NCBI RefSeq assembly: GCF_036321535.1
Contig: NC_087439.1
Span: 92,690,001-92,754,000, forward strand
From: Camelus dromedarius
Taxonomy: Eukaryota
Length of the DNA: 64,000 bases
Direction: 5' to 3'
In this document: positions 8,166-41,463 of the stretch, in pieces
Position numbering within the stretch: the stretch's first letter is position 1
Layout: each line of letters begins with the position of its first letter
Position numbers and translations under genes: made by a program
Notes under the pieces: model-generated
Databases searched by the model: none
What the model saw: the letters and a program-made list of their open reading frames with translations, nothing else
What the model was told of the DNA's origin: nothing

Positions 8166-11042
8166 TCTCTGGACATATGGGTCTTGTACATTTTAAATGC
8201 CAATAATATTAAGACTTCTTCTCCCTTCAGCAATGTATAAGTGTACTTTTTCTTCAAATTCTTGTCTACACTTACCTTCAGATTGAAAGTTTTTGCCAAC
8301 TCAATAGGTGAAAAAAATCTCAAGGTATTTTAATTTACATTTCCCTCATTAATTATTTATTTAAACATCTTTTTTTTTTTTTTTAAATGAAGTTGTTTGA
8401 CCAGTGAAGAAGAGACCTGGACTTGACCCCCCTCACTTACTAGAACTGATGCAACTTCTGATCACATCAGCTCTTTGAGCAACCCCACCATATTCTTGAC
8501 TCAGTGAATTTGTTCTTGTTGCTTGCAGTATTATTGGCTCAAATACTGGGGAGATCTCAGGGTATACTGGTTAGATATGGCTTGTTCCAGGGCTCAAACC
8601 ATGACCCCAGGACCCATTTTTCATCTGTAATTCTTGTGTCTGCTTCCTTGGTGATTACAGCCTTCTCAGGGTCATGATACCCCAGCATTGGGGGCTGTGG
8701 CCTGAGTCCTTTCCTCAGGATTCCTAGTAAGGCGCCTCTGCTTCACTGGCTCTCATTAAGTCACGTGTCCATTTCTGCACTAATCCCTGTGGCCAAAGGG
8801 ATGAGATGTGCTGAGTAGTTGAAGCCTGGGTTGCACGTTCGATCCCACAGTGGCTAGTGGTCCCTCACCTGAACCATGTATGAGAGTCCAGGGGAGGTGG
8901 CCGAGATGAGCCTCTCTCCAGGGGCTCCAAGTCCAAGAAATGCCAGTAGAGATCAGATGACACCAACGTCTAAATAAAATGCCACTGCGTTAATTTAGAA
9001 TTAGAGAGAGCTCTTTAATGTGACAAGAACACTTTCACTCCTCTGCAGGAATGTTCCTGCCCTCACCCCTCACTCATGGGTGTTTTAACGGGTTTGTGGG
9101 AATAGTTCAGGGGCTGAAATGCCTCATTCATAGCTGAGAACCCCTTTCCAGGGCCCCGTCTACCCACAACCCCCAGATCCATACCACCTTCTCCTGGGCG
9201 GCGTGGGATACCCTCTGCAGACCTGCCCCGGGTGTCCTCTGGGCCCCTCCTTTGTGAGCTGCCTTCTTTCTGTGAGTGCCCCCTATTGGATACTTCAGTG
9301 ACTGCCTGTCAGTCTGTTTCCAGCACTACTGCAACCTTTATTCTGGCCCTCACCTCCCACAAACCACAACCGTCACCCTTACTAAACCCCTAAGCACGCT
9401 GTGTATCCTCACTTGGCGTGATGTCTTTTTCAGTGGTTGTAAACAAAGGGCCAATGACCACAGTGAGGAAAGCCATAAAGTTCACCAGGAGAGTCTACCC
9501 CAGGGTCCACTGCAGTCAGAGCTGGACACGTCCCGGGACTGCTGAGTCCTCAGCAGGTCCAAGGGGATCCAGCTTGGTTAACTAGCAGCTCTGCCACCAG
9601 ACACGGTGCCACTAGAGGCGGGGGTGGCTGGGGACCCGAACAGCAGCTCCTGTTACTGAGGACAGTCACGCAGCTGCAGCGGCAACAGCACACTTGGAGT
9701 TCTGCCTTCCCCACGCCCTGCTCTGCTCACTCTCATGCCTTTGCACACGGAACGTGGGACACGAGCAGCCTCGATCCCACATGCACACGGGATTCTGCGT
9801 GGCTGTCAGTAGCAGTGAACGGGGAACAGAAATGACAGCTGTAAGCGGGGAGCAGAGGTCAGAAAATGACCTTGGGGCAAACGTGCGGCTGTGAGGCTGG
9901 GATGGAAATAAGATTCCGAAAAAGAGAGCACAGATGTGGCTGTTGGAGGGGAAGTAGGAGGACCAGGACTTTGGAGACGTTCACGACTTCCTGAGCAGAC
10001 TGGCGTCACTCCCCAGAGCAGGACCCAAGAAGTTGCACAATGGCCCCCACATTATGTACCCCCTACTCCGTTCTGGAGGAATCTGTCCTTATCAGGACTT
10101 AGGTCTGTAAGTGGCCTTGGAGAAAACGCTGCACATAAACTACGAGATGAAATAAAGGTCCAGATTAGTGGACACCTCAGGCCCCAAACAAACCAGCAGA
10201 AGACTTGAGCATCCAACAGACAGGAGAAGAATTCAGAGAGCCTGATCCGAGGCCAGGGGACGGCTCCCTCCTGTCCCATGATGAGCAGGCCCTGGGGGTT
10301 GGTGCTTTCAGACACCGCCTTGTCACTGCTAAGGGTGGTCTTGCCCAGGGACGCTTGAGATAACGGTAGCTCTTATTCCACAAGGCAGATATAGAACCTC
10401 CACCAACCCTTCGGTTGTCTTCATCAAGGATCGCTGCAGCTGCTTCAAGCAGTATCTCCTTGAAGAGTCATGAGAGGTGTCCTGGGGTGGAACAAGAATG
10501 AGACGGACAGCCAGCGTTGTCCCCGTTGAGGGAAAGCAGCTTTTGCAATGTTGTCTGTTTTCCTGGATGTGTTCCGTGTTCCCCATGATGGGGAAAAGAG
10601 TTTTAAGAGCTTTCAAATAGGGTCACCTACAGCAAAGAGGTTCTGTCTGGGGACGAGGTCATCAGTGACTCCTCAGAGCTGGGTGTCAGTCTCACAGAGA
10701 ACGGTTCACAGAGAAATAGGTGATCCAAGGAAATGGGAGGCCATGGCTTCACTAGGGAACTGGATGAAAAGCAAGAGAGTAAACTGGAAAGCCCGCAGAG
10801 GGAGCACTAGAGTCAGATGAGTTTTCCCAAGATAAGAAGGGTTAGTTTTTATCTGGAGAAAGTTGAAGTGGTAAAAGACACAGAGATTTATTCTGTAACG
10901 ATTAATGTAAGGAGGGGACAGTGCCTCCAATTACAAGCCATTTTGTTGAAATGGCTGAGAGATAAGATAAGGATGGCGGAACAAATGTAGGAGGCACAGC
11001 CTGCCCCGCAGTCAGTTGCTTCTGGCTCGGGCCACCGCGGCC

Positions 11043-11888
11043 ATGGGACCCCAGGTGCTGGCTGGACTGCTGCTGTGCCTGTGCGCCGGGCCCTGGGCCG
11101 AGGGCGGGAAGGTGCTGGTGGTCCCCATGGAGGGCAGCCACTGGCTCAGCATGCGGGAGGCCGTGCGGGAGCTCCACGCCAGGGGCCACCATACAGTCGT
11201 CCTTTCTCCAGAGGTGAACATGCACGTCAAGCCAGAGGACTTTTTCACCACGGAAACCTACGCTACTCCGAACACGCAGGACGAATTTGATTATGTCATG
11301 ATGGGCCAGGTGCATGTGCTATTTGAAAGAGTAAATTTTCTAAAGATGTTTTGGAATGCGATGGTAGGCTTGAAAAATGCGTCTTTAATCTTTCAAAGGT
11401 CTTGCGAGGCGCTGCTGTCTCACAAGGATCTGATCAGGCGCCTGAATGCCAGTTCCTTTGATGTGGTGTTAACTGACCCTGTTTACCCCTGCGGGGCAGT
11501 GCTGGCCAAGTACCTGACCCTTCCTGCGGTGTTTTTTTTGCGTGGCATTCCGTGTGACTTCGATGTTGAGGGCACAGCGTGCCCAAACCCTTTCTCGTAC
11601 GTTCCTAGGCTGTTAACAAGGAATTCAGACCACATGACATTCCTTCAAAGGGTCAAGAACATGCTGTACCCTCTGGCCCTGAAGTACATTTGCCACGCAT
11701 CTTACACTCCTTACGAACGGATGGCGTCCGAGCTTCTTCAGAGAGAGGTGTCGCTGGTGGAAGTTTTTAGCTCTGCGTCCGTGTGGCTGTTCAGAGGAGA
11801 CTTTGTGATGGATTACCCCCGGCCAGTCATGCCCAACATGGTCTTCATTGGGGGTATAAACTGTGCCAACAGGAAACCACTATCTCAG
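11043..11888 (+). CDS. UGT1A3/4/5-like variable exon 1, cassette 1, coding type A (282 codons)
   Basis: Signal peptide, [13 protein letters not shown] (catalytic His33), LTDP (Asp145), ends [13 protein letters not shown] followed by phase-0 donor cag|gtctgt. Confidence 0.93.
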
Positions 11889-13049
11889 GTCTGTATTGGT
11901 GCTTTTATTCCGTCCATGTTCCAAGTGCAACCCATTTAAAAAAGAACTTATATTCAGGTACTTATTTATCTACTGATCTTTCTAAATATTTCCACCTCTC
12001 AGTCTCTTGCTAACAGTCCTGGGTGAGCTAAATCGTTAAAGAGTCTCCAGTAGTGTGGTGAAGGCTTGTGATGGTCTTTGAGAGGAGTGACAGGAAGGGG
12101 TGAGGGTCTGTAATAGGTTTGGGAAGCAATGGTGTGATTCAACCCAGACTGCCCTTTGGTAAAGGCACCACGTCGTGGTTGTGCAGTTTTCTCCAGCTGA
12201 GCAGGAGCGGAGAACTTGAGCCGTGAACTCATCCACCGGGGTTTTTGCTTCATGGTGTTCAGTAGCAGGATTTAAGAACTAGCAAATTGCATTTGTTGAC
12301 ACGATAGTTCTTAGTGGTGTAGTGTTGGAAGGGACTGAGGTGTGGTCACAGGAGACCTAAACACCCAAAGGAGGCAGAGGTTTCAGAGAGGTCGAATAAA
12401 CTAAATGGGAGTGACACAATGGTGGAGAGAGAAGACGGGGTTCCTGTGATCGGAGCAAGAGATCACCGAGTCCAACTTTTGAGAGATGGAACCGTGCTGA
12501 CGAGGTGTCTTCTTCCCGAGAGTTGGTGTCTGGTGTGTGATGTGGGGATGTACCAGCGTTGGACTGCATGTCTTCTGCTTGGGACACTGAAGTCATTAAG
12601 GATGGTGGGCAGGGCTAGGGAGGAGATAAAACTGAGGCTATAAATGTAATGAAGGTGGGGGTAGGGATGCTGAGAAAGGAGTCTCAAAGGGAAGGGTTTG
12701 TTAGGAAGGGTCGACCGCATCACCAGACCTATCCCGCCACACCCCACCCCAGGTTTCCGTGGCGGTAACAGGGCTTTCCTGATCATTCCAGAGGCATCTT
12801 ACAAAACCCCGGATGTTTGGGTTCAATTGAAATAGGACTCTAGGGGGCTGGATTTGCTTCTTAATCTACCGAGTTAGCCATGTATTTTGCCCGTTTATGC
12901 CATAGTCATTGAATTGATCTTAACTGCTATGGCTTTAAATGTCTTCTAGGTTTTGTATTTTTACTGTCGTAGCTCTGTTTATTAATGTATATATTATTTT
13001 CAAGAACACCGACTTCATTTTCCTTTTTTGCTCACAACACAGATAATCA

Positions 13050-13215
13050 ATTTTTTTGTGTGTTTATTTTTTGGTCTGTGTTTCTGTTTAGTTTGTGTTG
13101 GTGGGGGGAGGTAATTAGGTTTATTCATTTAATTTTTTAATATCGAGGCACTGAGGACTGTACCCAGCCCCTTGCGCACGCTAAGCGTACGATCTACCGC
13201 TTGAGCGCTGCCCTC
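13050..13215 (-). mobile_element. Camelid-type tRNA SINE present in every array unit (others end at 18732, 24249, 29766, 35288, 40809)
   Basis: Reverse complement gagggcagcgctcaagcggtag...gctgggtacagtcctcagtgcc...aaacctaattacctcccccc aligns with the SINE at 6814. Confidence 0.8.
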
Positions 13216-16200
13216 TTCCTGCAAAGGATCTGACCTACTTGGTTTTCTTCTTCCTTGAAGTGGTGCATTTGTCCCGTTACACAATCTGTATGTATCCGTT
13301 AGATTTGTAAAAAGTGAAAAGTCGGAAGGCATTTAAAAATTATTGCCGCTGTTTTCCTTCTAGTTTTCCAATGGGAATATATTGTATGGAGTTTGACTGC
13401 ATTGGTTCAAGTCTTCACTCCCATTTTTCTAGCTGCATGACCTTGGGTGGGTGACCTAAGCATTCTGGCCTTAGTATTGCCACACTGAGCACACAATAAA
13501 TATGATCCATTTTCGTGATTTAGAAGATGCCGAGCAGGACAAGGTATGTCATCTGGAGGCATTTAGATAGGTTTGTGCCAATTATTTGTTACACGACAGA
13601 TCATTTACATTGAAATCCTCAAGTATCATAACAGGGTATGCACACCGTTGTCATGTTTGTTCCACTAAATGGTCTTTTACTTTGAGATTTTATCACTTTT
13701 ATTTATTTGGCTTGGTTTACCCGTAGATATCACTCCTTTAAATGTTTATGGAAATTGATCTCAAACTATGAAAGATTGAAGTCTAAATCTTTTATATGTG
13801 TGTTCCTTTTCCTTCTTAAGATTTAGGATGGGTTGCATTATCTTATTGGTGTTCTCAAAAAAAAAAAAACTCTAGGATTTGTTTATTCTGTTTACTATTG
13901 CTGTTTTCTCTTCCACTGATTGCAGCTTATTTTTAAATGAATGATATCATCCTTGTTGCCTTTGGTTCATTTTATAGTTGCTTTTCTCATTTCCTTAGGT
14001 AAACCTTAATTCCTTATAAAAATAATGAAGAACTGAAAGTCATAAATAAAACATGTTCTAGATCTCTAGGTTTTGGTACAAATTGCTATCATTTTCTCTT
14101 TGTTCACATTAATTTCTGTTTTTGATTTCTTCTTTGAATCAATGGCTATTGATTTTTTTTAAAAAAACAAGTCTGTTTTATAATTCCTATCTAGTTAAGA
14201 TATACTGTGGCTATGTTCTTTTTCTTCTAATTATTTTGGACTATAATTAGGGAATGGTTTCTTGTGAAGTCACCGATTAAAAAAATTTCTTACTAGATTT
14301 TATTCTGGTCTAGCATAGAATCATCCAATAGAATTATAGTGCAAGCCATGTATGTAACTGAGAGCTTTTTTAAGGCATGTTGAAAAAAAAAACCCAAGGT
14401 AGTAAATTATTTTTTAATCTATATTTTATTCAATCAAATACATCAAAAACATTATTCTTTAAACATACACGGAATACAAAATTTTTTTCAGGAGCTTGTT
14501 GCCATCCCCCCCTCGATTTCTTGAGATACAGTTGACATGCAGCACTGTCCAAGTTCAAGGTGCACAGCAGAAGGACATGACTTCCCTATCCCGTGATGCG
14601 ATTACCGCGGTAAACTGAGTGAACATCCATCAGCTCGTACACTTACAAAGTTAACGTGAAATGTCGCCCCAGAGAGTCTCCCCCAGGGTCCACTGCAGTC
14701 AGAGCAGGACACGTCCCGGGACTGCTGAGTCCTCAGCAGGTGCAAGGGGATCCAGCTTGGTTAACTAGCAGCTCTGCCACCAGACACGGTGCCACTAGAG
14801 GCGGGGGTGGCTGGGGACCCGAACAGCAGCTCCTGTTACTGAGGACAGTCATGCAGCTGCAGCGGCAACAGCACACTTGGAGTTCCGCCTTCCCCGCGCC
14901 CTGCTCTGCTCACTCTCATGCCTTTGCACACGGAACGTGGGACACGAGCAGCCTCGATCCCACATGCACACGGGATTCTGCGTGGCTGTCAGTAGCAGTG
15001 AACGGGGAGCAGAAATGACAGCTGTAAGCGGGGAGCAGAGGTCAGAAAATGACCTTGGGGCAAAGGTGCAGTTGTGAGGCTGGGACGGAAATAAGATTCC
15101 GTAAAAGAGAGCACAGATGTGGCTGTTGGAGGGGAAGTAAGAACACTGGGACCCTGGACTCACAGCCTACAAGGATGGATAAGCCAGGTGCTCCCTGCCC
15201 AGTGGCAGCTCATGTGACCCAGGAAGCATCGTGTTGGGCACGTGTTTGCTCGGTGCTGGATTCCGTTATCAGTGAAGTTCCCTAGTGGGGGTCACTTACT
15301 CCCAAAGGGAACCCTCAGCCTCTCCAGCACGTGGCCTGGTACTTGTTGTGGCTATGGGGAGCGCCAGGATGCAGAAGAGCTTGCTCAGGGCGAGGGAAGC
15401 CTGGGCAGCCCAAGGAGCCCTCTGGCCGCATCCCCAGGGCAGAAAGGACAAGGAGATGTCCAGATGTACTGAGCACGCGTGGCGTCACTCCCTGGGGCGG
15501 GGCTGGACTCGTGGGCATGTGAATCAAGAGTTGCGCAGGGGACCCCACATTATGTACGCCTCCTGTGCTGGAGGAATCTGTCCTCACCAGGACTTAGGGC
15601 TGCAAGTGACCTTGGAGAAAAATTTGCACATAAACTATGAGATGCAATAAAGGTCCAGATTAATGGACACCCCAGGCCCTAAACAGAGTAGCAGAAGACT
15701 TGAGCCTCCAACAGTCAGGAGAAGAATTCAGGGAGCCTGATCTGAGACCAGGGAACGGCTCCCTTCGGTCCCATGGCGAGCAGCCCTGGGGGACAGTGAT
15801 CTGACCTCCCATGTCATTGCTAAGGGGGGTCTTACCCATTGATGCTTGAGATGATGGCAACTCTTATTCCATGAGGCAGATATAGAATGTCAACCAACAC
15901 TTCTGTTGTCTTCATCAAGGATCCCTAAAGATAGTTCCTTATCTGACAGCAGCTTCAAGTAGACTCCTCTGTGCACGCTAGGAAAGGCGTCCTGGGGTGG
16001 GACAGGAATGAGACAGACAGCCAGTGTTGTCTCCATTGAGAGAAAGCTGTCTTAGTAATACTATCTGATTTCCTGGATGTGCTCCATGTTCCCCATGATG
16101 GCGGGAAAGAGTTTTAAGAGCTTCCAGTAGGGTCACCTGCAGCAGAGAGGTTCTGGATGGGGACGAAGGCTGAGGTGTCTCCTCATACCTCAGTGTCACC

Positions 16201-16419
16201 TTCACAGAGCATGGTTCACAGAGAAACAGGAGAGGATCCAAGGAAACGGGCGTCCACAGCCTCGCTTTGGAACTGGATGAAAAATAAGAGAGTGAACTGG
16301 AATGGCCCCAGAGGGAGCAGCAGAGTCAGATGAGTTGTTTTGGAGATAAGAGAGATTGGTCTTTAGCTGGGAGAAGGTAGAAATGTTGAAAGACAGGGAT
16401 AGATTTATTCTGTAATGAT

Positions 16420-16559
16420 TAATGTAAGGAGGGGACTTGCCTCCAATTACATGCCATTTTGCTTGCGTGGCTGGGAGATAAGATAAAGACAGTGGAAACC
16501 ACTGTAGGAGGCACAGCCTGCCCCGCAGTCAGTTGCTTCTGGCTCGGGCCACCGCGGCC
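16420..16559 (+). promoter_or_regulatory. Proximal promoter of type-B cassettes (same at +5517 and +11034): HNF1-like site, XRE, tandem GATA motifs
   Basis: tgtaatgattaat (HNF1-like), TTGCGTG at 16463-16469 (AhR XRE consensus TNGCGTG), agataagataa; function inferred from motif match only. Confidence 0.55.
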
Positions 16560-17405
16560 ATGGGACCCCAGGTGCTGGCTGGACTGCTGCTGTGCCTGTG
16601 CGCCGGGCCCTGGGCCGAGGGCGGGAAGGTGCTGGTGGTCCCCATGGAGGGCAGCCACTGGCTCAGCATGCGGGAGGCCGTGCGGGAGCTCCACGCCAGG
16701 GGCCACCACGCAGTCGTCCTTTCTCCAGAGGTGAACATGCACATCAAGCCAGAGGACTTTTTCACCACGGAAACCTATGCTACTACGTACACGCAGGACA
16801 CACTTGATTACCTCATGATAGCCCATATTCATTTGGTTTTTGAGAGAGTAAATTTTCTAAAGACGTTTTGGAATACAATGCTAGTTTTCAAAAATGTGTC
16901 TGTGATCTTTCAAAGGTCTTGCGAGGCGCTGCTGTCTCACAAGGATCTGATCAGGCGCCTGAATGCCAGTTCCTTTGATGTGGTGTTAACTGACCCTGTT
17001 TACCCCTGCGGGGCAGTGCTGGCCAAGTACCTGTCCCTTCCTGTGGTGTTCTTTCTGCGTTTCATTCCATGTGACTTCGATGTTGAGGGCACAGCGTGCC
17101 CAAACCCTTTCTCGTACGTTCCTAGGCTGTTAACAAGGAATTCAGACCACATGACATTCCTTCAAAGGGTCAAGAACATGCTGTACCCTCTGGCCCTGAA
17201 GTACATTTGCCACGCATCTTACACTCCTTACGAACGGATGGCGTCCGAGCTTCTTCAGAGAGAGGTGTCGCTGGTGGAAGTTTTTAGCTCTGCGTCCGTG
17301 TGGCTGTTCAGAGGAGACTTTGTGATGGATTACCCCCGGCCAGTCATGCCCAACATGGTCTTCATTGGGGGTATAAACTGTGCCAACAGGAAACCACTAT
17401 CTCAG
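16560..17405 (+). CDS. UGT1A3/4/5-like variable exon 1, cassette 2, coding type B
   Basis: Intact 846-bp ORF ending KPLSQ with donor cag|gtctgt; 23 aa differences from type A. Confidence 0.93.
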
Positions 17406-20400
17406 GTCTGTATTGGTGCTTTTATTCCGTCCATGTTCCAAGTGCAACCCATTTAAAAAAGAACTTATATTCAGGTACTTATTTATCTACTGATCTTTCT
17501 AAATATTTCCACCTCTCAGTCTCTTGCTAACAGTCCTGGGTGAGCTAAATCGTTAAAGAGTCTCCAGTAGTGTGGTGAAGGCTTGTGATGGTCTTTGAGA
17601 GGAGTGACAGGAAGGGGTGAGGGTCTGTAATAGGTTTGGGAAGCAATGGTGTGATTCAACCCAGACTGCCCTTTGGTAAAGGCACCACGTCGTGGTTGTG
17701 CAGTTTTCTCCAGCTGAGCAGGAGCGGAGAACTTGAGCCGTGAACTCATCCACCGGGGTTTTTGCTTCATGGTGTTCAGTAGCAGGATTTAAGAACTAGC
17801 AAATTGCATTTGTTGACACGATAGTTCTTAGTGGTGTAGTGTTGGAAGGGACTGAGGTGTGGTCACAGGAGACCTAAACACCCAAAGGAGGCAGAGGTTT
17901 CAGAGAGGTCGAATAAACTAAATGGGAGTGACACAATGGTGGAGAGAGAAGACGGGGTTCCTGTGATCGGAGCAAGAGATCACCGAGTCCAACTTTTGAG
18001 AGATGGAACCGTGCTGACGAGGTGTCTTCTTCCCGAGAGTTGGTGTCTGGTGTGTGATGTGGGGATGTACCAGCGTTGGACTGCATGTCTTCTGCTTGGG
18101 ACACTGAAGTCATTAAGGATGGTGGGCAGGGCTAGGGAGGAGATAAAACTGAGGCTATAAATGTAATGAAGGTGGGGGTAGGGATGCTGAGAAAGGAGTC
18201 TCAAAGGGAAGGGTTTGTTAGGAAGGGTCGACCGCATCACCAGACCTATCCCGCCACACCCCACCCCAGGTTTCCGTGGCGGTAACAGGGCTTTCCTGAT
18301 CATTCCAGAGGCATCTTACAAAACCCCGGATGTTTGGGTTCAATTGAAATAGGACTCTAGGGGGCTGGATTTGCTTCTTAATCTACCGAGTTAGCCATGT
18401 ATTTTGCCCGTTTATGCCATAGTCATTGAATTGATCTTAACTGCTATGGCTTTAAATGTCTTCTAGGTTTTGTATTTTTACTGTCGTAGCTCTGTTTATT
18501 AATGTATATATTATTTTCAAGAACACCGACTTCATTTTCCTTTTTTGCTCACAACACAGATAATCAATTTTTTTGTGTGTTTATTTTTTGGTCTGTGTTT
18601 CTGTTTAGTTTGTGTTGGTGGGGGGAGGTAATTAGGTTTATTCATTTAATTTTTTAATATCGAGGCACTGAGGACTGTACCCAGCCCCTTGCGCACGCTA
18701 AGCGTACGATCTACCGCTTGAGCGCTGCCCTCTTCCTGCAAAGGATCTGACCTACTTGGTTTTCTTCTTCCTTGAAGTGGTGCATTTGTCCCGTTACACA
18801 ATCTGTATGTATCCGTTAGATTTGTAAAAAGTGAAAAGTCGGAAGGCATTTAAAAATTATTGCCGCTGTTTTCCTTCTAGTTTTCCAATGGGAATATATT
18901 GTATGGAGTTTGACTGCATTGGTTCAAGTCTTCACTCCCATTTTTCTAGCTGCATGACCTTGGGTGGGTGACCTAAGCATTCTGGCCTTAGTATTGCCAC
19001 ACTGAGCACACAATAAATATGATCCATTTTCGTGATTTAGAAGATGCCGAGCAGGACAAGGTATGTCATCTGGAGGCATTTAGATAGGTTTGTGCCAATT
19101 ATTTGTTACACGACAGATCATTTACATTGAAATCCTCAAGTATCATAACAGGGTATGCACACCGTTGTCATGTTTGTTCCACTAAATGGTCTTTTACTTT
19201 GAGATTTTATCACTTTTATTTATTTGGCTTGGTTTACCCGTAGATATCACTCCTTTAAATGTTTATGGAAATTGATCTCAAACTATGAAAGATTGAAGTC
19301 TAAATCTTTTATATGTGTGTTCCTTTTCCTTCTTAAGATTTAGGATGGGTTGCATTATCTTATTGGTGTTCTCAAAAAAAAAAAAACTCTAGGATTTGTT
19401 TATTCTGTTTACTATTGCTGTTTTCTCTTCCACTGATTGCAGCTTATTTTTAAATGAATGATATCATCCTTGTTGCCTTTGGTTCATTTTATAGTTGCTT
19501 TTCTCATTTCCTTAGGTAAACCTTAATTCCTTATAAAAATAATGAAGAACTGAAAGTCATAAATAAAACATGTTCTAGATCTCTAGGTTTTGGTACAAAT
19601 TGCTATCATTTTCTCTTTGTTCACATTAATTTCTGTTTTTGATTTCTTCTTTGAATCAATGGCTATTGATTTTTTTTAAAAAAACAAGTCTGTTTTATAA
19701 TTCCTATCTAGTTAAGATATACTGTGGCTATGTTCTTTTTCTTCTAATTATTTTGGACTATAATTAGGGAATGGTTTCTTGTGAAGTCACCGATTAAAAA
19801 AATTTCTTACTAGATTTTATTCTGGTCTAGCATAGAATCATCCAATAGAATTATAGTGCAAGCCATGTATGTAACTGAGAGCTTTTTTAAGGCATGTTGA
19901 AAAAAAAAACCCAAGGTAGTAAATTATTTTTTAATCTATATTTTATTCAATCAAATACATCAAAAACATTATTCTTTAAACATACACGGAATACAAAATT
20001 TTTTTCAGGAGCTTGTTGCCATCCCCCCCTCGATTTCTTGAGATACAGTTGACATGCAGCACTGTCCAAGTTCAAGGTGCACAGCAGAAGGACATGACTT
20101 CCCTATCCCGTGATGCGATTACCGCGGTAAACTGAGTGAACATCCATCAGCTCGTACACTTACAAAGTTAACGTGAAATGTCGCCCCAGAGAGTCTCCCC
20201 CAGGGTCCACTGCAGTCAGAGCAGGACACGTCCCGGGACTGCTGAGTCCTCAGCAGGTGCAAGGGGATCCAGCTTGGTTAACTAGCAGCTCTGCCACCAG
20301 ACACGGTGCCACTAGAGGCGGGGGTGGCTGGGGACCCGAACAGCAGCTCCTGTTACTGAGGACAGTCATGCAGCTGCAGCGGCAACAGCACACTTGGAGT

Positions 20401-22076
20401 TCCGCCTTCCCCGCGCCCTGCTCTGCTCACTCTCATGCCTTTGCACACGGAACGTGGGACACGAGCAGCCTCGATCCCACATGCACACGGGATTCTGCGT
20501 GGCTGTCAGTAGCAGTGAACGGGGAGCAGAAATGACAGCTGTAAGCGGGGAGCAGAGGTCAGAAAATGACCTTGGGGCAAAGGTGCAGTTGTGAGGCTGG
20601 GACGGAAATAAGATTCCGTAAAAGAGAGCACAGATGTGGCTGTTGGAGGGGAAGTAAGAACACTGGGACCCTGGACTCACAGCCTACAAGGATGGATAAG
20701 CCAGGTGCTCCCTGCCCAGTGGCAGCTCATGTGACCCAGGAAGCATCGTGTTGGGCACGTGTTTGCTCGGTGCTGGATTCCGTTATCAGTGAAGTTCCCT
20801 AGTGGGGGTCACTTACTCCCAAAGGGAACCCTCAGCCTCTCCAGCACGTGGCCTGGTACTTGTTGTGGCTATGGGGAGCGCCAGGATGCAGAAGAGCTTG
20901 CTCAGGGCGAGGGAAGCCTGGGCAGCCCAAGGAGCCCTCTGGCCGCATCCCCAGGGCAGAAAGGACAAGGAGATGTCCAGATGTACTGAGCACGCGTGGC
21001 GTCACTCCCTGGGGCGGGGCTGGACTCGTGGGCATGTGAATCAAGAGTTGCGCAGGGGACCCCACATTATGTACGCCTCCTGTGCTGGAGGAATCTGTCC
21101 TCACCAGGACTTAGGGCTGCAAGTGACCTTGGAGAAAAATTTGCACATAAACTATGAGATGCAATAAAGGTCCAGATTAATGGACACCCCAGGCCCTAAA
21201 CAGAGTAGCAGAAGACTTGAGCCTCCAACAGTCAGGAGAAGAATTCAGGGAGCCTGATCTGAGACCAGGGAACGGCTCCCTTCGGTCCCATGGCGAGCAG
21301 CCCTGGGGGACAGTGATCTGACCTCCCATGTCATTGCTAAGGGGGGTCTTACCCATTGATGCTTGAGATGATGGCAACTCTTATTCCATGAGGCAGATAT
21401 AGAATGTCAACCAACACTTCTGTTGTCTTCATCAAGGATCCCTAAAGATAGTTCCTTATCTGACAGCAGCTTCAAGTAGACTCCTCTGTGCACGCTAGGA
21501 AAGGCGTCCTGGGGTGGGACAGGAATGAGACAGACAGCCAGTGTTGTCTCCATTGAGAGAAAGCTGTCTTAGTAATACTATCTGATTTCCTGGATGTGCT
21601 CCATGTTCCCCATGATGGCGGGAAAGAGTTTTAAGAGCTTCCAGTAGGGTCACCTGCAGCAGAGAGGTTCTGGATGGGGACGAAGGCTGAGGTGTCTCCT
21701 CATACCTCAGTGTCACCTTCACAGAGCATGGTTCACAGAGAAACAGGAGAGGATCCAAGGAAACGGGCGTCCACAGCCTCGCTTTGGAACTGGATGAAAA
21801 ATAAGAGAGTGAACTGGAATGGCCCCAGAGGGAGCAGCAGAGTCAGATGAGTTGTTTTGGAGATAAGAGAGATTGGTCTTTAGCTGGGAGAAGGTAGAAA
21901 TGTTGAAAGACAGGGATAGATTTATTCTGTAATGATTAATGTAAGGAGGGGACTTGCCTCCAATTACATGCCATTTTGCTTGCGTGGCTGGGAGATAAGA
22001 TAAAGACAGTGGAAACCACTGTAGGAGGCACAGCCTGCCCCGCAGTCAGTTGCTTCTGGCTCGGGCCACCGCGGCC

Positions 22077-22922
22077 ATGGGACCCCAGGTGCTGGCTGGA
22101 CTGCTGCTGTGCCTGTGCGCCGGGCCCTGGGCCGAGGGCGGGAAGGTGCTGGTGGTCCCCATGGAGGGCAGCCACTGGCTCAGCATGCGGGAGGCCGTGC
22201 GGGAGCTCCACGCCAGGGGCCACCACGCAGTCGTCCTTTCTCCAGAGGTGAACATGCACATCAAGCCAGAGGACTTTTTCACCACGGAAACCTATGCTAC
22301 TACGTACACGCAGGACACACTTGATTACCTCATGATAGCCCATATTCATTTGGTTTTTGAGAGAGTAAATTTTCTAAAGACGTTTTGGAATACAATGCTA
22401 GTTTTCAAAAATGTGTCTGTGATCTTTCAAAGGTCTTGCGAGGCGCTGCTGTCTCACAAGGATCTGATCAGGCGCCTGAATGCCAGTTCCTTTGATGTGG
22501 TGTTAACTGACCCTGTTTACCCCTGCGGGGCAGTGCTGGCCAAGTACCTGTCCCTTCCTGTGGTGTTCTTTCTGCGTTTCATTCCATGTGACTTCGATGT
22601 TGAGGGCACAGCGTGCCCAAACCCTTTCTCGTACGTTCCTAGGCTGTTAACAAGGAATTCAGACCACATGACATTCCTTCAAAGGGTCAAGAACATGCTG
22701 TACCCTCTGGCCCTGAAGTACATTTGCCACGCATCTTACACTCCTTACGAACGGATGGCGTCCGAGCTTCTTCAGAGAGAGGTGTCGCTGGTGGAAGTTT
22801 TTAGCTCTGCGTCCGTGTGGCTGTTCAGAGGAGACTTTGTGATGGATTACCCCCGGCCAGTCATGCCCAACATGGTCTTCATTGGGGGTATAAACTGTGC
22901 CAACAGGAAACCACTATCTCAG
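22077..22922 (+). CDS. UGT1A3/4/5-like variable exon 1, cassette 3, coding type B
   Basis: Same translation as cassette 2; intact donor. Confidence 0.9.
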
Positions 22923-25900: not shown

Positions 25901-27593
25901 AACAGCACACTTGGAGTTCCGCCTTCCCCGCGCCCTGCTCTGCTCACTCTCATGCCTTTGCACACGGAACGTGGGACACGAGCAGCCTCGATCCCACATG
26001 CACACGGGATTCTGCGTGGCTGTCAGTAGCAGTGAACGGGGAGCAGAAATGACAGCTGTAAGCGGGGAGCAGAGGTCAGAAAATGACCTTGGGGCAAAGG
26101 TGCAGTTGTGAGGCTGGGACGGAAATAAGATTCCGTAAAAGAGAGCACAGATGTGGCTGTTGGAGGGGAAGTAAGAACACTGGGACCCTGGACTCACAGC
26201 CTACAAGGATGGATAAGCCAGGTGCTCCCTGCCCAGTGGCAGCTCATGTGACCCAGGAAGCATCGTGTTGGGCACGTGTTTGCTCGGTGCTGGATTCCGT
26301 TATCAGTGAAGTTCCCTAGTGGGGGTCACTTACTCCCAAAGGGAACCCTCAGCCTCTCCAGCACGTGGCCTGGTACTTGTTGTGGCTATGGGGAGCGCCA
26401 GGATGCAGAAGAGCTTGCTCAGGGCGAGGGAAGCCTGGGCAGCCCAAGGAGCCCTCTGGCCGCATCCCCAGGGCAGAAAGGACAAGGAGATGTCCAGATG
26501 TACTGAGCACGCGTGGCGTCACTCCCTGGGGCGGGGCTGGACTCGTGGGCATGTGAATCAAGAGTTGCGCAGGGGACCCCACATTATGTACGCCTCCTGT
26601 GCTGGAGGAATCTGTCCTCACCAGGACTTAGGGCTGCAAGTGACCTTGGAGAAAAATTTGCACATAAACTATGAGATGCAATAAAGGTCCAGATTAATGG
26701 ACACCCCAGGCCCTAAACAGAGTAGCAGAAGACTTGAGCCTCCAACAGTCAGGAGAAGAATTCAGGGAGCCTGATCTGAGACCAGGGAACGGCTCCCTTC
26801 GGTCCCATGGCGAGCAGCCCTGGGGGACAGTGATCTGACCTCCCATGTCATTGCTAAGGGGGGTCTTACCCATTGATGCTTGAGATGATGGCAACTCTTA
26901 TTCCATGAGGCAGATATAGAATGTCAACCAACACTTCTGTTGTCTTCATCAAGGATCCCTAAAGATAGTTCCTTATCTGACAGCAGCTTCAAGTAGACTC
27001 CTCTGTGCACGCTAGGAAAGGCGTCCTGGGGTGGGACAGGAATGAGACAGACAGCCAGTGTTGTCTCCATTGAGAGAAAGCTGTCTTAGTAATACTATCT
27101 GATTTCCTGGATGTGCTCCATGTTCCCCATGATGGCGGGAAAGAGTTTTAAGAGCTTCCAGTAGGGTCACCTGCAGCAGAGAGGTTCTGGATGGGGACGA
27201 AGGCTGAGGTGTCTCCTCATACCTCAGTGTCACCTTCACAGAGCATGGTTCACAGAGAAACAGGAGAGGATCCAAGGAAACGGGCGTCCACAGCCTCGCT
27301 TTGGAACTGGATGAAAAATAAGAGAGTGAACTGGAATGGCCCCAGAGGGAGCAGCAGAGTCAGATGAGTTGTTTTGGAGATAAGAGAGATTGGTCTTTAG
27401 CTGGGAGAAGGTAGAAATGTTGAAAGACAGGGATAGATTTATTCTGTAATGATTAATGTAAGGAGGGGACTTGCCTCCAATTACATGCCATTTTGCTTGC
27501 GTGGCTGGGAGATAAGATAAAGACAGTGGAAACCACTGTAGGAGGCACAGCCTGCCCCGCAGTCAGTTGCTTCTGGCTCGGGCCACCGCGGCC

Positions 27594-28439
27594 ATGGGAC
27601 CCCAGGTGCTGGCTGGACTGCTGCTGTGCCTGTGCGCCGGGCCCTGGGCCGAGGGCGGGAAGGTGCTGGTGGTCCCCATGGAGGGCAGCCACTGGCTCAG
27701 CATGCGGGAGGCCGTGCGGGAGCTCCACGCCAGGGGCCACCACGCAGTCGTCCTTTCTCCAGAGGTGAACATGCACATCAAGCCAGAGGACTTTTTCACC
27801 ACGGAAACCTATGCTACTACGTACACGCAGGACACACTTGATTACCTCATGATAGCCCATATTCATTTGGTTTTTGAGAGAGTAAATTTTCTAAAGACGT
27901 TTTGGAATACAATGCTAGTTTTCAAAAATGTGTCTGTGATCTTTCAAAGGTCTTGCGAGGCGCTGCTGTCTCACAAGGATCTGATCAGGCGCCTGAATGC
28001 CAGTTCCTTTGATGTGGTGTTAACTGACCCTGTTTACCCCTGCGGGGCAGTGCTGGCCAAGTACCTGTCCCTTCCTGTGGTGTTCTTTCTGCGTTTCATT
28101 CCATGTGACTTCGATGTTGAGGGCACAGCGTGCCCAAACCCTTTCTCGTACGTTCCTAGGCTGTTAACAAGGAATTCAGACCACATGACATTCCTTCAAA
28201 GGGTCAAGAACATGCTGTACCCTCTGGCCCTGAAGTACATTTGCCACGCATCTTACACTCCTTACGAACGGATGGCGTCCGAGCTTCTTCAGAGAGAGGT
28301 GTCGCTGGTGGAAGTTTTTAGCTCTGCGTCCGTGTGGCTGTTCAGAGGAGACTTTGTGATGGATTACCCCCGGCCAGTCATGCCCAACATGGTCTTCATT
28401 GGGGGTATAAACTGTGCCAACAGGAAACCACTATCTCAG
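27594..28439 (+). CDS. UGT1A3/4/5-like variable exon 1, cassette 4, coding type B
   Basis: Same translation as cassette 2; intact donor. Confidence 0.9.
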
Positions 28440-31400: not shown

Positions 31401-33115
31401 CATGCAGCTGCAGCGGCAACAGCACACTTGGAGTTCCGCCTTCCCCGCGCCCTGCTCTGCTCACTCTCATGCCTTTGCACACGGAACGTGGGACACGAGC
31501 AGCCTCGATCCCACATGCACACGGGATTCTGCGTGGCTGTCAGTAGCAGTGAACGGGGAGCAGAAATGACAGCTGTAAGCGGGGAGCAGAGGTCAGAAAA
31601 TGACCTTGGGGCAAAGGTGCAGTTGTGAGGCTGGGACGGAAATAAGATTCCGTAAAAGAGAGCACAGATGTGGCTGTTGGAGGGGAAGTAAGAACACTGG
31701 GACCCTGGACTCACAGCCTACAAGGATGGATAAGCCAGGTGCTCCCTGCCCAGTGGCAGCTCATGTGACCCAGGAAGCATCGTGTTGGGCACGTGTTTGC
31801 TCGGTGCTGGATTCCGTTATCAGTGAAGTTCCCTAGTGGGGGTCACTTACTCCCAAAGGGAACCCTCAGCCTCTCCAGCACGTAGCCTGGCACTTGTTGT
31901 GGCTATGGGGAGCGCCAGGATGCAGAAGAGCTTGCTCAGGGCGAGGGAAGCCTGGGCAGCCCAAGGAGCCCTCTGGCCGCATCCCCAGGGCAGAAAGGAC
32001 AAGGAGATGTCCAGGTGTACTGAGCACGCGTGGCGTCACTCCACGGGGCAGGGCCAGGCTCGTGGGCTTGCAATCCAAGCAGCTGCACAGGGGACCCCAC
32101 GTTATGTACGCCTCCTGTTCTGGAGGAATGTGTCCTCACCTGGACTTAGGGCTGCAAGTGACCTTGGAGAAAAATTTGCACATAAACTACGAGATGCAAA
32201 AAGGTCCGAATTAATGCACACCCCAGGGCCCAAACAGAGTAGCGGAAGAATTGTACCTCCAACAATCAGGAGAAGAATTCAGACAGCCTGATCCGAGGCC
32301 AGGGGACGGCTCCCTCCTGTCCCGTGGTGAGCAGCCCCTGGAGGATGGCGTTCTCTGACCCCCCGTGTCACTGCTAAGGGTGGTCTTGCTCGTGGATGCT
32401 TGAGATAACGGTAACTCTTATTCCACGAGGCAGATACAGAATCTCAACCAACCCTTCTGTTGTCTTCGTCAAGGATCGCTGCAGATACTTCCATGTCTGA
32501 GAGCTGCTTCAAGTAGTCTCTCCTTGAAGAGTCACGAGAGGCGTCCTGGGGTGGAACAGGAATGAGATGGGCAGCCAGCGTCCGGTCCCCATGGACAGAA
32601 AGCTGTCTTAGAAATGCCTGTTTTCCTGGATGTGCTCTGTGTTCCCCATGACGGTGGGAAAGAGATTTAAGGGCTCCAGATAGCGTCACCTGCAGCAGAG
32701 AGGTTGTGTTTCGAGATGAGGCCTTAGGTGACTCCTCAAATCTCAGAGTCGACTTCACAGAATACGGTTCACAGAGAAATAGGAGAGGATCCAAGGAAAC
32801 GGGCGTCCACAGCCTCACTTTGGGAACTGGATGAAAAACAGGAGAGTGAACTGGAATGCACCCCCCCAGAGGGAGCAGCAGAGTCAGATGAGTTTTCCCA
32901 AGGTAAGAGGGGTTGGTCTTTATCTGGGAGAAAGTAAAATGGTGAAAGACAGGGAGAGATTTATTCTCTAATGATTAACGTAAGGGGGGGACTTGCCTCC
33001 AATTACATGCCATTTTGTTGAAATGGCTGGGATATAAGATAAAGACAGTGGAAACCACTGTAGGAGGCACAGCCTGCCCCGCAGTCAGTTGCTTCTGGCT
33101 CGGGCCACCGCGGCC

Positions 33116-33961
33116 ATGGGACCCCAGGTGCTGGCTGGACTGCTGCTGTGCCTGTGCGCCGGGCCCTGGGCCGAGGGCGGGAAGGTGCTGGTGGTCCCCA
33201 TGGAGGGCAGCCACTGGCTCAGCATGCGGGAGGCCGTGCGGGAGCTCCACGCCAGGGGCCACCATACAGTCGTCCTTTCTCCAGAGGTGAACATGCACGT
33301 CAAGCCAGAGGACTTTTTCACCACGGAAACCTACGCTACTCCGAACACGCAGGACGAATTTGATTATGTCATGATGGGCCAGGTGCATGTGCTATTTGAA
33401 AGAGTAAATTTTCTAAAGATGTTTTGGAATGCGATGGTAGGCTTGAAAAATGCGTCTTTAATCTTTCAAAGGTCTTGCGAGGCGCTGCTGTCTCACAAGG
33501 ATCTGATCAGGCGCCTGAATGCCAGTTCCTTTGATGTGGTGTTAACTGACCCTGTTTACCCCTGCGGGGCAGTGCTGGCCAAGTACCTGACCCTTCCTGC
33601 GGTGTTTTTTTTGCGTGGCATTCCGTGTGACTTCGATGTTGAGGGCACAGCGTGCCCAAACCCTTTCTCGTACGTTCCTAGGCTGTTAACAAGGAATTCA
33701 GACCACATGACATTCCTTCAAAGGGTCAAGAACATGCTGTACCCTCTGGCCCTGAAGTACATTTGCCACGCATCTTACACTCCTTACGAACGGATGGCGT
33801 CCGAGCTTCTTCAGAGAGAGGTGTCGCTGGTGGAAGTTTTTAGCTCTGCGTCCGTGTGGCTGTTCAGAGGAGACTTTGTGATGGATTACCCCCGGCCAGT
33901 CATGCCCAACATGGTCTTCATTGGGGGTATAAACTGTGCCAACAGGAAACCACTATCTCAG
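33116..33961 (+). CDS. UGT1A3/4/5-like variable exon 1, cassette 5, coding type A
   Basis: Same translation as cassette 1; intact donor; different upstream promoter from cassette 1. Confidence 0.92.
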
Positions 33962-38637: not shown

Positions 38638-39482
38638 ATGGGACCCCAGGTGCTGGCTGGACTGCTGCTGTGCCTGTGCGCCGGGCCCTGGGCCGAGGGC
38701 GGGAAGGTGCTGGTGGTCCCCCATGGAGGGCAGCCACTGGCTCAGCATGCGGGAGGCCGTGCGGGAGCTCCACGCCAGGGGCCACCATACAGTCGTCCTT
38801 TCTCCAGAGGTGAACATGCACGTCAAGCCAGAGGACTTTTTCACCACGGAAACCTACGCTACTCCGAACACGCAGGACGAATTTGATTATGTCATGATGG
38901 GCCAGGTGCATGTGCTATTTGAAAGAGTAAATTTTCTAAAGATGTTTTGGAATGCGATGGTAGGCTTGAAAAATGCGTCTTTAATCTTTCAAAGGTCTTG
39001 CGAGGCGCTGCTGTCTCACAAGGATCTGATCAGGCGCCTGAATGCCAGTTCCTTTGATGTGGTGTTAACTGACCCTGTTTACCCCTGCGGGGCAGTGCTG
39101 GCCAAGTACCTGACCCTTCTGCGGTGTTTTTTTTGCGTGGCATTCCGTGTGACTTCGATGTTGAGGGCACAGCGTGCCCAAACCCTTTCTCGTACGTTCC
39201 TAGGCTGTTAACAAGGATTCAGACCACATGACATTCCTTCAAAGGGTCAAGAACATGCTGTACCCTCTGGCCCTGAAGTACATTTGCCACGCATCTTACA
39301 CTCCTTACGAACGGATGGCGTCCGAGCTTCTTCAGAGAGAGGTGTCGCTGGTGGAAGTTTTTAGCTCTGCGTCCGTGTGGCTGTTCAGAGGAGACTTTGT
39401 GATGGATTACCCCCGGCCAGTCATGCCCAACATGGTCTTCATTGGGGGTATAAACTGTGCCAACAGGAAACCACTATCTCAG
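38638..39482 (+). CDS. UGT1A3/4/5-like variable exon 1, cassette 6, type A, with three 1-bp homopolymer indels (probably read errors)
   Basis: 845 bp; +C near 38720, -C near 39119, -A near 39216; otherwise matches cassette 5; donor intact; lies close to a contig end. Confidence 0.7.
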
Positions 39483-41463
39483 GTCTGTATTGGTGCTTTT
39501 ATTCCGTCCATGTTCCAAGTGCAACCCATTTAAAAAAGAACTTATATTCAGGTACTTATTTATCTACTGATCTTTCTAAATATTTCCACCTCTCAGTCTC
39601 TTGCTAACAGTCCTGGGTGAGCTAAATCGTTAAAGAGTCTCCAGTAGTGTGGTGAAGGCTTGTGATGGTCTTTGAGAGGAGTGACAGGAAGGGGTGAGGG
39701 TCTGTAATAGGTTTGGGAAGCAATGGTGTGATTCAACCCAGACTGCCCTTTGGTAAAGGCACCACGTCGTGGTTGTGCAGTTTTCTCCAGCTGAGCAGGA
39801 GCGGAGAACTTGAGCCGTGAACTCATCCACCGGGGTTTTTGCTTCATGGTGTTCAGTAGCAGGATTTAAGAACTAGCAAATTGCATTTGTTGACACGATA
39901 GTTCTTAGTGGTGTAGTGTTGGAAGGGACTGAGGTGTGGTCACAGGAGACCTAAACACCCAAAGGAGGCAGAGGTTTCAGAGAGGTCGAATAAACTAAAT
40001 GGGAGTGACACAATGGTGGAGAGAGAAGACGGGGTTCCTGTGATCGGGAGCAAGAGATCACCGAGTCCAACTTTTGAGAGATGGAACCGTGCTGACGAGG
40101 TGTCTTCTTCCCGAGAGTTGGTGTCTGGTGTGTGATGTGGGGATGTACCAGCGTTGGACTGCATGTCTTCTGCTTGGGACACTGAAGTCATTAAGGATGG
40201 TGGGCAGGGCTAGGGAGGAGATAAAACTGAGGCTATAAATGTAATGAAGGTGGGGGTAGGGATGCTGAGAAAGGAGTCTCAAAGGGAAGGGTTTGTTAGG
40301 AAGGGTCGACCGCATCACCAGACCTATCCCGCCACACCCCACCCCAGGTTTCCGTGGCGGTAACAGGGCTTTCCTGATCATTCCAGAGGCATCTTACAAA
40401 ACCCCGGATGTTTGGGTTCAATTGAAATAGGACTCTAGGGGGCTGGATTTGCTTCTTAATCTACCGAGTTAGCCATGTATTTTGCCCGTTTATGCCATAG
40501 TCATTGAATTGATCTTAACTGCTATGGCTTTAAATGTCTTCTAGGTTTTGTATTTTTACTGTCGTAGCTCTGTTTATTAATGTATATATTATTTTCAAGA
40601 ACACCGACTTCATTTTCCTTTTTTGCTCACAACACAGATAATCATTTTTTTGTGTGTTTATTTTTTGGTCTGTGTTTCTGTTTAGTTTGTGTTGGTGGGG
40701 GGAGGTAATTAGGTTTATTCATTTAATTTTTTAATATCGAGGCACTGAGGACTGTACCCAGCCCCTTGCGCACGCTAAGCGTACGATCTACCGCTTGAGC
40801 GCTGCCCTCTTCCTGCAAAGGATCTGACCTACTTGGTTTTCTTCTTCCTTGAAGTGGTGCATTTGTCCCGTTACACAATCTGTATGTATCCGTTAGATTT
40901 GTAAAAGTGAAAAGTCGGAAGGCATTTAAAAATTATTGCCGCTGTTTTCCTTCTAGTTTTCCAATGGGAATATATTGTATGGAGTTTGACTGCATTGGTT
41001 CAAGTCTTCACTCCCATTTTTCTAGCTGCATGACCTTGGGTGGGTGACCTAAGCATTCTGGCCTTAGTATTGCCACACTGAGCACACAATAAATATGATC
41101 CATTTTCGTGATTTAGAAGATGCCGAGCAGGACAAGGTATGTCATCTGGAGGCATTTAGATAGGTTTGTGCCAATTATTTGTTACACGACAGATCATTTA
41201 CATTGAAATCCTCAAGTATCATAACAGGGTATGCACACCGTTGTCATGTTTGTTCCACTAAATAGTCTTTTACTTTGAGATTTTATCACTTTTATTTATT
41301 TGGCTTGGTTTACCCGTAGATATCACTCCTTTAAATGTTTATGGAAATTGATCTCAAACTATGAAAGATTGAAGTCTAAATCTTTTATATGTGTGTTCCT
41401 TTTCCTTCTTAAGATTTAGGATGGGTTGCATTATCTTATTGGTGTTCTCAAAAAAAAAAAAAC

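Follow-up and report, generated by a model that had tools for sequence, protein, structure and literature searches.

A tandem array of UGT1A first-exon cassettes

We analysed a window of 64,000 nucleotides from the Camelus dromedarius assembly mCamDro1.pat (GCA_036321535.1, CM070313.1). The assembly derives from PacBio HiFi and OmniC data and comprises 366 contigs in 171 scaffolds, leaving only ~195 gaps (PMC13603154). A tandem array lies upstream of DNAJB3 and UGT1A1 exon 1, on the same strand as the latter (Table 1). The modular repeat of ~5.5 kb proposed in the sequence-only reading was confirmed by counting identical 24-mers across the window, which recur at offsets of 5517 (15,204 words) and 5522 (5,994 words) and also at 5520-5523. 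Tandem Repeats Finder reported no array in the window because its longest period is 500, and the k-mer offsets were used instead. The 5' edge of the array was set by BLAST of L001 8443-8914 against 14669-15139.

Table 1. Features of the dromedary locus in window coordinates; each exon 1 of the array begins with its ATG.
Feature	Coordinates	Strand	Remarks
Tandem array, assembled part	9485..41463	+	5.8 units, period 5517-5523 bp; k-mer offsets and unit alignment
Promoter type P1	9957..10985	+	unit 1 only; orthologous to first alpaca cassette (95%); absent from Bactrian arrays
Unit 1 exon 1, type A	11043..11888	+	282 codons, GT donor at 11889
A/B-specific patches (numbered as in unit 1)	11192-11387 and 11517-11552	+	within codons 51-168; A and B differ at 36 nt and 23 aa
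Homogenised tract of unit 1	11553..15463	+	3' half of exon 1, intron start and spacer; zero differences among units 1-5
Unit 2 exon 1, type B	16560..17405	+	P2 promoter at about 15464-16502; B patch at 16709-16904
Unit 3 exon 1, type B	22077..22922	+	whole unit same as unit 2
Unit 4 exon 1, type B	27594..28439	+	whole unit same as unit 2
Unit 5 exon 1, type A	33116..33961	+	behind promoter P3 (about 32000-33058)
Unit 6 exon 1, type A	38638..39482	+	behind P3; frameshifted as assembled
Contig-end junk	41463..41480	.	18 bases after A13 run; no match elsewhere in window
200-N scaffold gap cutting the array	41481..41680	.	must hide 3.8 kb or more, with one or more cassettes (arithmetic from unit coordinates)
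True 3' edge of array	41681..41721	+	41 bases homologous to 12195-12235, 3 differences; then unique sequence
DNAJB3-like intronless ORF	51138..51926	-	DnaJ domain; downstream of array
UGT1A1-type exon 1	57965..58828	+	288 codons

In each 5.5-kb unit a putative promoter precedes exon 1, which is 846 nt long and is followed by a phase-0 GT donor; intron/spacer sequence makes up a further 3.6 kb. Six copies of exon 1 were found, and comparison of the units bore out the earlier exon pattern A-B-B-B-A-A; the promoters follow the order P1 (unit 1), P2 (units 2-4) and P3 (units 5 and 6). A and B exons alike matched PF00201 at profile positions 1-263 of 499 (E 1e-85), that is, the N-terminal, acceptor-binding half of UDP-glucuronosyltransferase. 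This match, together with the position of the array, upheld its assignment to UGT1A first exons. The best named matches were UGT1A3-like, human UGT1A3 being 70% identical. The camel exons keep both the catalytic His of GSHW and the PLSQ exon end; in units 1-5 and all orthologues the exon has 282 codons ending in the conserved PLSQ. The GTCTGT donor follows in phase 0, and its retention by every unit, as originally claimed, was found after codon 282 in 6/6 cases. A motif scan of the window placed the common exons 2-5 beyond it.

RefSeq-type predicted models splice an A exon to the common exons 2-5 (P0003), and among P0003, P0129 and P0131 the exons so joined are of type A or mosaic. A word search of RNA sequencing runs, which scores presence only, recovered 0.50-0.67 of the exon words; among RNA contigs, none was seen with these exons joined to exon 2. 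In the annotation of the mCamDro1 assembly the cassettes are called as 298-aa read-through products, not as exon-2-joined isoforms.

About 1.1 kb of type-specific sequence lies upstream of each exon. Promoter and exon 1 had been described as repeating modules; every unit indeed has such an upstream block, but three types of block, 78-87% alike, can be told apart. The A exons have no one common promoter, because unit 1 carries P1 and units 5 and 6 carry P3. All promoter types, alpaca included, conserve an AT-rich GATAAGATAA box and a TGATTAAT element, both candidate elements identified from sequence. Differences between A and B exons fall on or beside residues 93, 96, 99 and 174 of the modelled UGT1A1 acceptor pocket (residues from PMC1885805). 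In the patches dN is 0.097 and dS 0.137; the ratio of 0.71 is above that of the rest of the exon, yet below 1, and a claim of positive selection on the patches was rejected.

Identity of the units and truncation of the array

Units 2-4 are 100% identical, giving an exact match of 14,791 bp at offset 5517. The copies had been thought base-identical outside the variable patches; this holds for units 1-5 from 11553 to the next promoter, but not for unit 6, which differs from unit 5 by six 1-bp homopolymer indels and three substitutions. As had been pointed out, the length of the A13 run is constant across the six units. The array-leading copy of the last part of the spacer, ahead of unit 1 (9826 onward), is already diverged. 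Three of the six indels lie inside the unit 6 exon, whose ORF is therefore frameshifted as assembled, with the donor kept; these frameshifting indels are most likely consensus errors at the contig end. In P3, unit 5 has a derived G at 32841 and 32986, where unit 6 has the ancestral A found in Bactrian camel, wild camel and alpaca. These two sites suggest, on sequence grounds, that units 5 and 6 are separate copies.

The array is cut by the 200-N run, the sole N run that behaves as a scaffold gap. Odd-length N runs (130-176 nt) were also considered as assembly gaps and rejected; they lie inside L1-like sequence and resemble deliberate masks. On its 3' side the array truly ends in the 41 bases that follow the gap, which means that the window lacks one or more further cassettes; the same junction occurs in CamDro3, C. 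bactrianus, C. ferus and alpaca. The six-unit array of the sequence-only reading thus stands as six assembled copies of exon 1 but not as a real count, because the array is cut short at the gap and lacks its terminal cassette. A gap placed exactly at the array is expected if the reads are shorter than the run of identical units. The B-B-B run may be over-expanded; the evidence favours under-representation at least as much.

In CamDro3, an older dromedary assembly and the only other one compared, the array is collapsed to one chimeric unit. This unit equals unit 1 up to about 11838, with 2 differences in 3.8 kb; it then shows 11 clustered differences in 11839-12229 (~2.8% over the last 390 bp of the cassette) before continuing into the post-gap sequence. 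The cluster and the run-on mark a distinct terminal cassette, absent from the window; the CamDro3 unit carries K266. The single CamDro3 unit is clearly a chimera of the first and terminal cassettes and supports no copy count, and the RefSeq model XP_010997326.2, built on CamDro3, is the same chimera. An exact-protein look-up in Logan with the dromedary A, B and terminal ORFs returned no contigs, and hence no independent dromedary contigs; in 20 whole-genome runs, 95-96% of the words of 8063-14062 were present, a search that scores presence only.

Concerted evolution of the camelid arrays

Orthologous arrays occupy the same site, with the same two edges and a period of 5510-5530, in three other camelids, each gapless. 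Camelus bactrianus (L004) has three cassettes, P2-B, P2-A and P3-A, and C. ferus (L005/L007) has the same three; the alpaca, Vicugna pacos (L006), has two, P1-like and P3-like, with a period of 5519. Besides edges and period, the dromedary array has in common with the other Camelus arrays the A/B patch types and promoters P2 and P3, and with the alpaca array promoters P1 and P3. Unlike the dromedary array, these arrays have no amplified identical units, and their spacers differ by 0.4-5% between units; the dromedary assembly alone shows P2-B and P3-A units amplified. The Bactrian arrays further differ from it in lacking P1 and in possessing a P2-A cassette, which is missing from the dromedary assembly.

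The promoter tree grouped sequences by type across species (SH-aLRT 99-100), whereas the tree of the shared exon/intron part grouped them by species (support 97-99). Residue 226 is likewise common to A and B within a species, being E226 in dromedary and Q226 in Bactrian and wild camel. All dromedary spacers resemble the Bactrian pre-P3 spacer (97.6%) and not the pre-P2 spacer (94.6%). Within-species likeness in the homogenised part and orthology elsewhere, seen in identity matrices and in conflicting trees with support of 97-100, indicate that the concerted evolution of the array is genuine. The recent unequal crossover or ongoing homogenisation suggested at the outset agrees with this pattern and with the cassette numbers of two in alpaca and three in Bactrian and wild camel.

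Origin and meaning of the dromedary array

We consider it probable that the dromedary carries a real, young and expanded array of UGT1A3/4/5-group first exons. Its architecture is old, with two units in alpaca and three in Bactrian and wild camel and a common period and edges. Unequal crossover and gene conversion would hold exon ends and spacer near-identical within a species. The promoters P1, P2 and P3 and the two acceptor-pocket patches, A and B, remain distinct and would be exchanged between units as modules. Amplification of entire P2-B and P3-A units would have occurred very recently in the dromedary lineage, to give a predicted haplotype of P1A, three P2B, two or more P3A, the gap and the terminal cassette, that is, at least seven cassettes. 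Each intact cassette is expected to yield its own mRNA through splicing to the common exons 2-5; with amplification, two enzymes that differ in their aglycone pockets would thus be present at a higher dose. Architecture, orthology, concerted evolution and truncation by the gap are demonstrated; we infer true copy number, per-copy transcription and any dosage effect.

The count itself could be an assembly artefact. Over-expansion or mixing of haplotypes, through period-shifted overlaps in the 3.9-kb identical tract or through both parental alleles threaded in tandem, would leave in reality about one cassette per type plus the terminal one (P1A, P2B, P3A and perhaps a second P3A). Units 2-4 show no private variants and no distinguishing base over 16.5 kb, which is the limit of spanning by HiFi reads, and the B-B-B count therefore has no independent support; unit-1-specific and unit-5-specific sequences lie ~20.5 kb apart, farther than most HiFi reads reach. 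Unit 6 sits at a contig end with homopolymer errors and junk next to the gap, the G/A sites that separate units 5 and 6 may reflect two alleles, and related species carry just two or three cassettes. Against such a miscount, four or five cassettes with promoters 13-20% diverged every 5.5 kb would be easy for HiFi data, and a gap would be unexpected, given the small total in this assembly. The order A exon, spacer, P3 moreover requires a read-supported junction that a P1A-P2B-P3A array does not contain, and two sites distinguish unit 5 from unit 6, which is ancestral at both. Overlap assemblers more often collapse than expand perfect tandem repeats, which also counts against the miscount, and we regard it as unlikely.

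The copies might instead be real and their identity partly a product of the consensus, true differences at a few sites per kb having been erased by read correction or polishing, in which case the array would be older than it appears. The gapless Bactrian units are 99.4-99.6% alike in the homologous tract, not 100%, and the terminal cassette in CamDro3 diverges over its final stretch, both of which would fit. HiFi assemblers, however, normally retain paralogous variants, as they did for the two single-base differences between units 5 and 6; the identity extends over 3.6 kb in five units and 5.5 kb in three, the A13 run included; and the cross-species signal of concerted evolution is independent of the dromedary consensus. 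This explanation appears the more improbable of the two.

UGT1A first exons determine which drugs, plant phenolics, amines and steroids are glucuronidated. If the recent expansion is real, the lineage-specific camelid series of two, three and at least seven cassettes would be a clean natural case of dosage and specificity evolving by unequal crossover at a detoxification locus, with a practical bearing on camel pharmacology and veterinary drug dosing. For annotation, the current reference lacks the terminal cassette, and unit 6 is miscalled. A more far-reaching proposal would have an array very recently amplified and probably copy-number-polymorphic, with seven or perhaps many more cassettes (the rest in the gap). 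A higher hepatic dose of two enzymes that differ in their acceptor pockets would then be an adaptation to toxins of desert plants, and the array would be a strong case of concerted evolution in mammalian UGT1. Taken as a whole, the proposal is speculative and rather doubtful. Our search of the literature on UGT1A in camel/Camelus found no description of the array.

The closest known counterparts are human UGT1A3, UGT1A4 and UGT1A5, first exons of the same subgroup with their own promoters, which likewise precede UGT1A1 exon 1 and the common exons. In human the copies have clearly diverged and lie at irregular intervals, whereas the camel units keep a strict 5.5-kb period, contain 100% identical tracts and include amplified identical units. 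The clustered protocadherins offer a resemblance of process, with gene conversion among neighbouring variable exons (Noonan et al., 2004, as summarised in PMC1885805): tandem variable first exons are there homogenised in part and diverse in the parts that determine specificity. They are an unrelated protein family and are not known to show a comparable recent amplification of whole units. Vertebrate Ugt1 clusters in general share with the camelid array the variable and constant exons, species-specific exon duplications and diversity in hypervariable acceptor-pocket regions (Li and Wu, 2007; PMC1885805). The same study found that these clusters evolve by birth and death and that, outside the dog phenol subgroup, gene conversion is not prevalent (PMC1885805). 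The camelid array departs from this picture in that part of the exon and the entire spacer evolve strongly in concert, and, if our reading of the series is correct, in the shuffling of promoter and substrate-pocket patches as separate modules.

Organization of the cassette array

The six assembled UGT1A3/4/5-type exon-1 copies, in the A-B-B-B-A-A order and at the ∼5.5-kb spacing proposed by the sequence-only reading, were confirmed by k-mer offsets and unit alignment. Identical 24-mers recur in the window at offsets of 5517 (15,204 words) and 5522 (5,994 words), and also at 5520-5523; the segment map contains a single exact self-match of 14,791 bp at offset 5517 (11553-26343). Tandem Repeats Finder did not report the array in the window because its period limit of 500 is below the unit length. 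Exon 1 is 846 nt long (282 codons), ends in PLSQ followed by a GTCTGT donor, and matches the N-terminal half of the Pfam profile PF00201. With a DnaJ-domain ORF and a UGT1A1-type exon 1 downstream, the assignment to the UGT1A locus is therefore correct. Several long ORFs overlap on both strands around the DNAJB3-like gene (51034-52302). Only the minus-strand one has a Pfam match (the plus-strand ORF 51034-51657 has none), and the extra ORFs are probably by-products of GC-rich sequence.

Features of the array and its surroundings (window coordinates; A and B, exon types; P1-P3, promoter types)
Feature	Position	Strand	Remark
Unit 1 UGT exon 1, type A, promoter P1	ATG 11043	+	
Unit 2 UGT exon 1, type B, promoter P2	ATG 16560	+	
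Unit 3 UGT exon 1, type B, promoter P2	ATG 22077	+	
Unit 4 UGT exon 1, type B, promoter P2	ATG 27594	+	
Unit 5 UGT exon 1, type A, promoter P3	ATG 33116	+	
Unit 6 UGT exon 1, type A, promoter P3	ATG 38638	+	Frame broken as assembled
TGATTAAT element and GATAAGATAA box	10900-10985		Equivalents in all units and in the alpaca locus (L006)
DnaJ-domain ORF (DNAJB3-like), downstream of array	51138-51926	-	Pfam match
UGT1A1-type exon 1, downstream of array	57965-58828	+	
N runs in L1-like sequence	2954-3110, 3286-3415, 5046-5194, 7924-8062, 43881-44021, 46319-47036		

All units are alike from ∼57 bp 5' of the ATG through codon 50. The exon types are set by two patches (unit 1 coordinates 11192-11387 and 11517-11552), in which A and B differ at 36 nucleotides and 23 residues (dN 0.097, dS 0.137). 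The promoters, each ∼1.1 kb, form three types with pairwise identities of 78-87%, and not the two unit types originally described. Near-identity outside the variable patches held for units 1-5, which show zero differences between 11553 and the next promoter, a tract comprising the remainder of the exon, the beginning of the intron and the spacer; units 2-4 are identical over their whole length. It did not hold for unit 6, which departs from unit 5 by three substitutions and six single-base indels, all in homopolymers, three of them disrupting the exon reading frame. At 32841 and 32986, unit 5 carries a derived G while unit 6 retains the ancestral A of Bactrian camel, wild camel and alpaca. Upstream sequence has diverged by 13-20%, yet every promoter type, and alpaca as well, keeps the TGATTAAT element and the AT-rich GATAAGATAA box, which may be core promoter or HNF1-type elements.

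The 3' gap and the number of units

The array does not end with a sixth unit at 41463, as had been supposed, but is cut there by a gap. Behind the A13 run of unit 6 stand 18 bases (41463-41480) that match neither strand of the rest of the window and were probably left in the assembly from a read end or a chimera, and then 200 N. The first 41 post-gap bases (41681-41721) correspond by homology to unit coordinates 12195-12235, differing at 3 positions, and give way to unique sequence; this junction is the array 3' edge in every other assembly examined (CamDro3, C. bactrianus, C. ferus and alpaca). Unit 6 extends beyond the edge coordinate into spacer and is therefore not the last unit. The array is truncated, and at least one further promoter and exon are absent, a calculated minimum of ∼3.8 kb (∼0.8 kb of remaining spacer plus ∼3.0 kb of promoter, exon and 300 bp). 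The count of six copies is not reliable and is probably a lower bound. N runs of 130-176 nt elsewhere all lie inside L1-like sequence; they were rejected as assembly gaps and resemble deliberate masks.

The assembly, GCA_036321535.1 (mCamDro1.pat), represents the paternal haplotype of a male dromedary, which the Vertebrate Genomes Project assembled with PacBio HiFi and OmniC data. It has 171 scaffolds and 366 contigs (PMC13603154), which gives ∼195 gaps in 2.31 Gb. The calculated chance of a given 32-kb stretch abutting a gap is ∼0.3%; the contig probably broke because of the array itself. Homopolymer indels such as those of unit 6 are consistent with a HiFi contig end that has too little read support, and from the post-gap contig starting exactly at the repeat edge we infer that overlapping repeat sequence may have been trimmed.

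We consider it probable that the dromedary array is real and expanded. Units 5 and 6 are distinct copies, with different states at 32841 and 32986. An array with one unit per type should be trivial for HiFi reads and would not break a contig, and the order 'A exon, spacer, P3' needs read support of its own. These points speak against an assembly with an inflated unit count, which we judge unlikely even though private variants are absent from the 16.5-kb B-B-B run, the unique anchors flanking that run are separated by ∼20.5 kb, the contig ends in unit 6 with sequence of poor quality, and no count is backed by an independent dromedary assembly (CamDro3 has one unit). That the copies are real and their perfect identity artificial seems very doubtful. 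Twenty dromedary whole-genome runs contain 95-96% of the words of 8063-14062, indicating presence and not copy number, and some RNA runs contain 50-67% of the exon words, again indicating presence only.

Camelid assemblies and the age of the copies

A and B read-through ORFs were matched only on CM070313.1 of GCA_036321535.1. The single CamDro3 unit (GCA_000803125.3, CM016631.2; locus L001, 7021-13351) follows unit 1 up to ∼11838 with 2 differences in a total of 3.8 kb; a cluster of 11 further differences, M266K among them, occupies 11839-12229, after which the unit passes directly into the post-gap sequence. We read CamDro3 as a collapsed array, apparently a fusion in which the first cassette contributes the 5' part and a different, terminal cassette the 3' end; the models KAB1278669.1 and XP_010997326.2 (P0003), both with K266, would then be chimeric. 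Exactly three cassettes, P2-B, P2-A and P3-A, are present in C. bactrianus (GCA_048773025.1, L004, no N), and these three recur in C. ferus (GCA_009834535.1, L005/L007); both the P2-A unit and the junction of the terminal P3-A cassette were confirmed on short Logan contigs from further samples of the Bactrian lineage. Alpaca (GCA_048564905.1, no N) has two cassettes with a period of 5519, one P1-like (95% to unit 1) and one P3-like (92.5%). The P1 cassette is common to dromedary and alpaca and absent in Bactrian and wild camels (L004 2594-16720; L007 2593-16722), which implies that the first unit was lost there, probably by unequal crossover in the ∼470-bp leading repeat (9485-9956, matching 14669-15139 at 97%). 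In the predicted C. bactrianus isoform XP_074220622.1 (P0130), an A-type exon supplies its 5' two-thirds and a UGT1A1-type exon 1 its 3' third; this resembles an artefact of gene modelling, or is possibly a real hybrid exon.

Unique flanks of the dromedary and Bactrian-lineage arrays diverge by ∼0.5-1.4%, so copies as old as the split would differ at roughly a dozen sites per 3.6-kb tract; five such dromedary tracts show zero differences. The two lineages split ∼4-5 million years ago. Given that date, and if the consensus is faithful, the 95% bound on copy age is roughly 0.2 million years per copy.

Concerted evolution and predicted function

The sequence-only reading was largely right in what it observed and partly right in how it interpreted this. 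Its proposal of recent unequal crossover or homogenization is supported: promoters group by type across species (support 99-100), whereas the shared exon/intron part and the spacers group by species (97-100). Unit 1 falls with alpaca cassette V1 (P1), units 5 and 6 with the third Bactrian cassette and alpaca V2 (P3), and units 2-4 with Bactrian and wild-camel cassettes (P2). Residue 226 is E in both exon types of dromedary and Q in those of Bactrian and wild camels. All dromedary spacers resemble the Bactrian pre-P3 type (97.6%) and not the pre-P2 type (94.6%), which the alpaca spacer resembles. P2 precedes both B and A exons in Bactrian camels and solely B in dromedary, and the Bactrian model P0128 has patch 1 of type B and patch 2 of type A. 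Shuffling of promoter and exon modules is visible in the camelid arrays.

An intact UGT1A cassette with promoter and donor gives a separate mRNA by splicing to exons 2-5, and by this logic each intact camel cassette would do so; the predicted models P0003, P0129 and P0131 join an A exon and a mosaic B/A exon to exons 2-5. In UGT1A1 numbering (camel numbering + 6), the A/B differences include positions 93, 96, 99 and 174 as well as positions next to further residues that line the modelled UGT1A1 acceptor pocket according to PMC1885805. It is therefore plausible that the A and B enzymes differ in aglycone preference; a dietary link is speculation. The array represents a lineage-specific expansion and a strong case of concerted evolution within a well-known kind of locus. 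Li and Wu concluded that vertebrate Ugt1 clusters follow birth-and-death evolution, gene conversion playing little part outside dog (PMC1885805); the array of camelids clearly departs from this in degree, not in kind.
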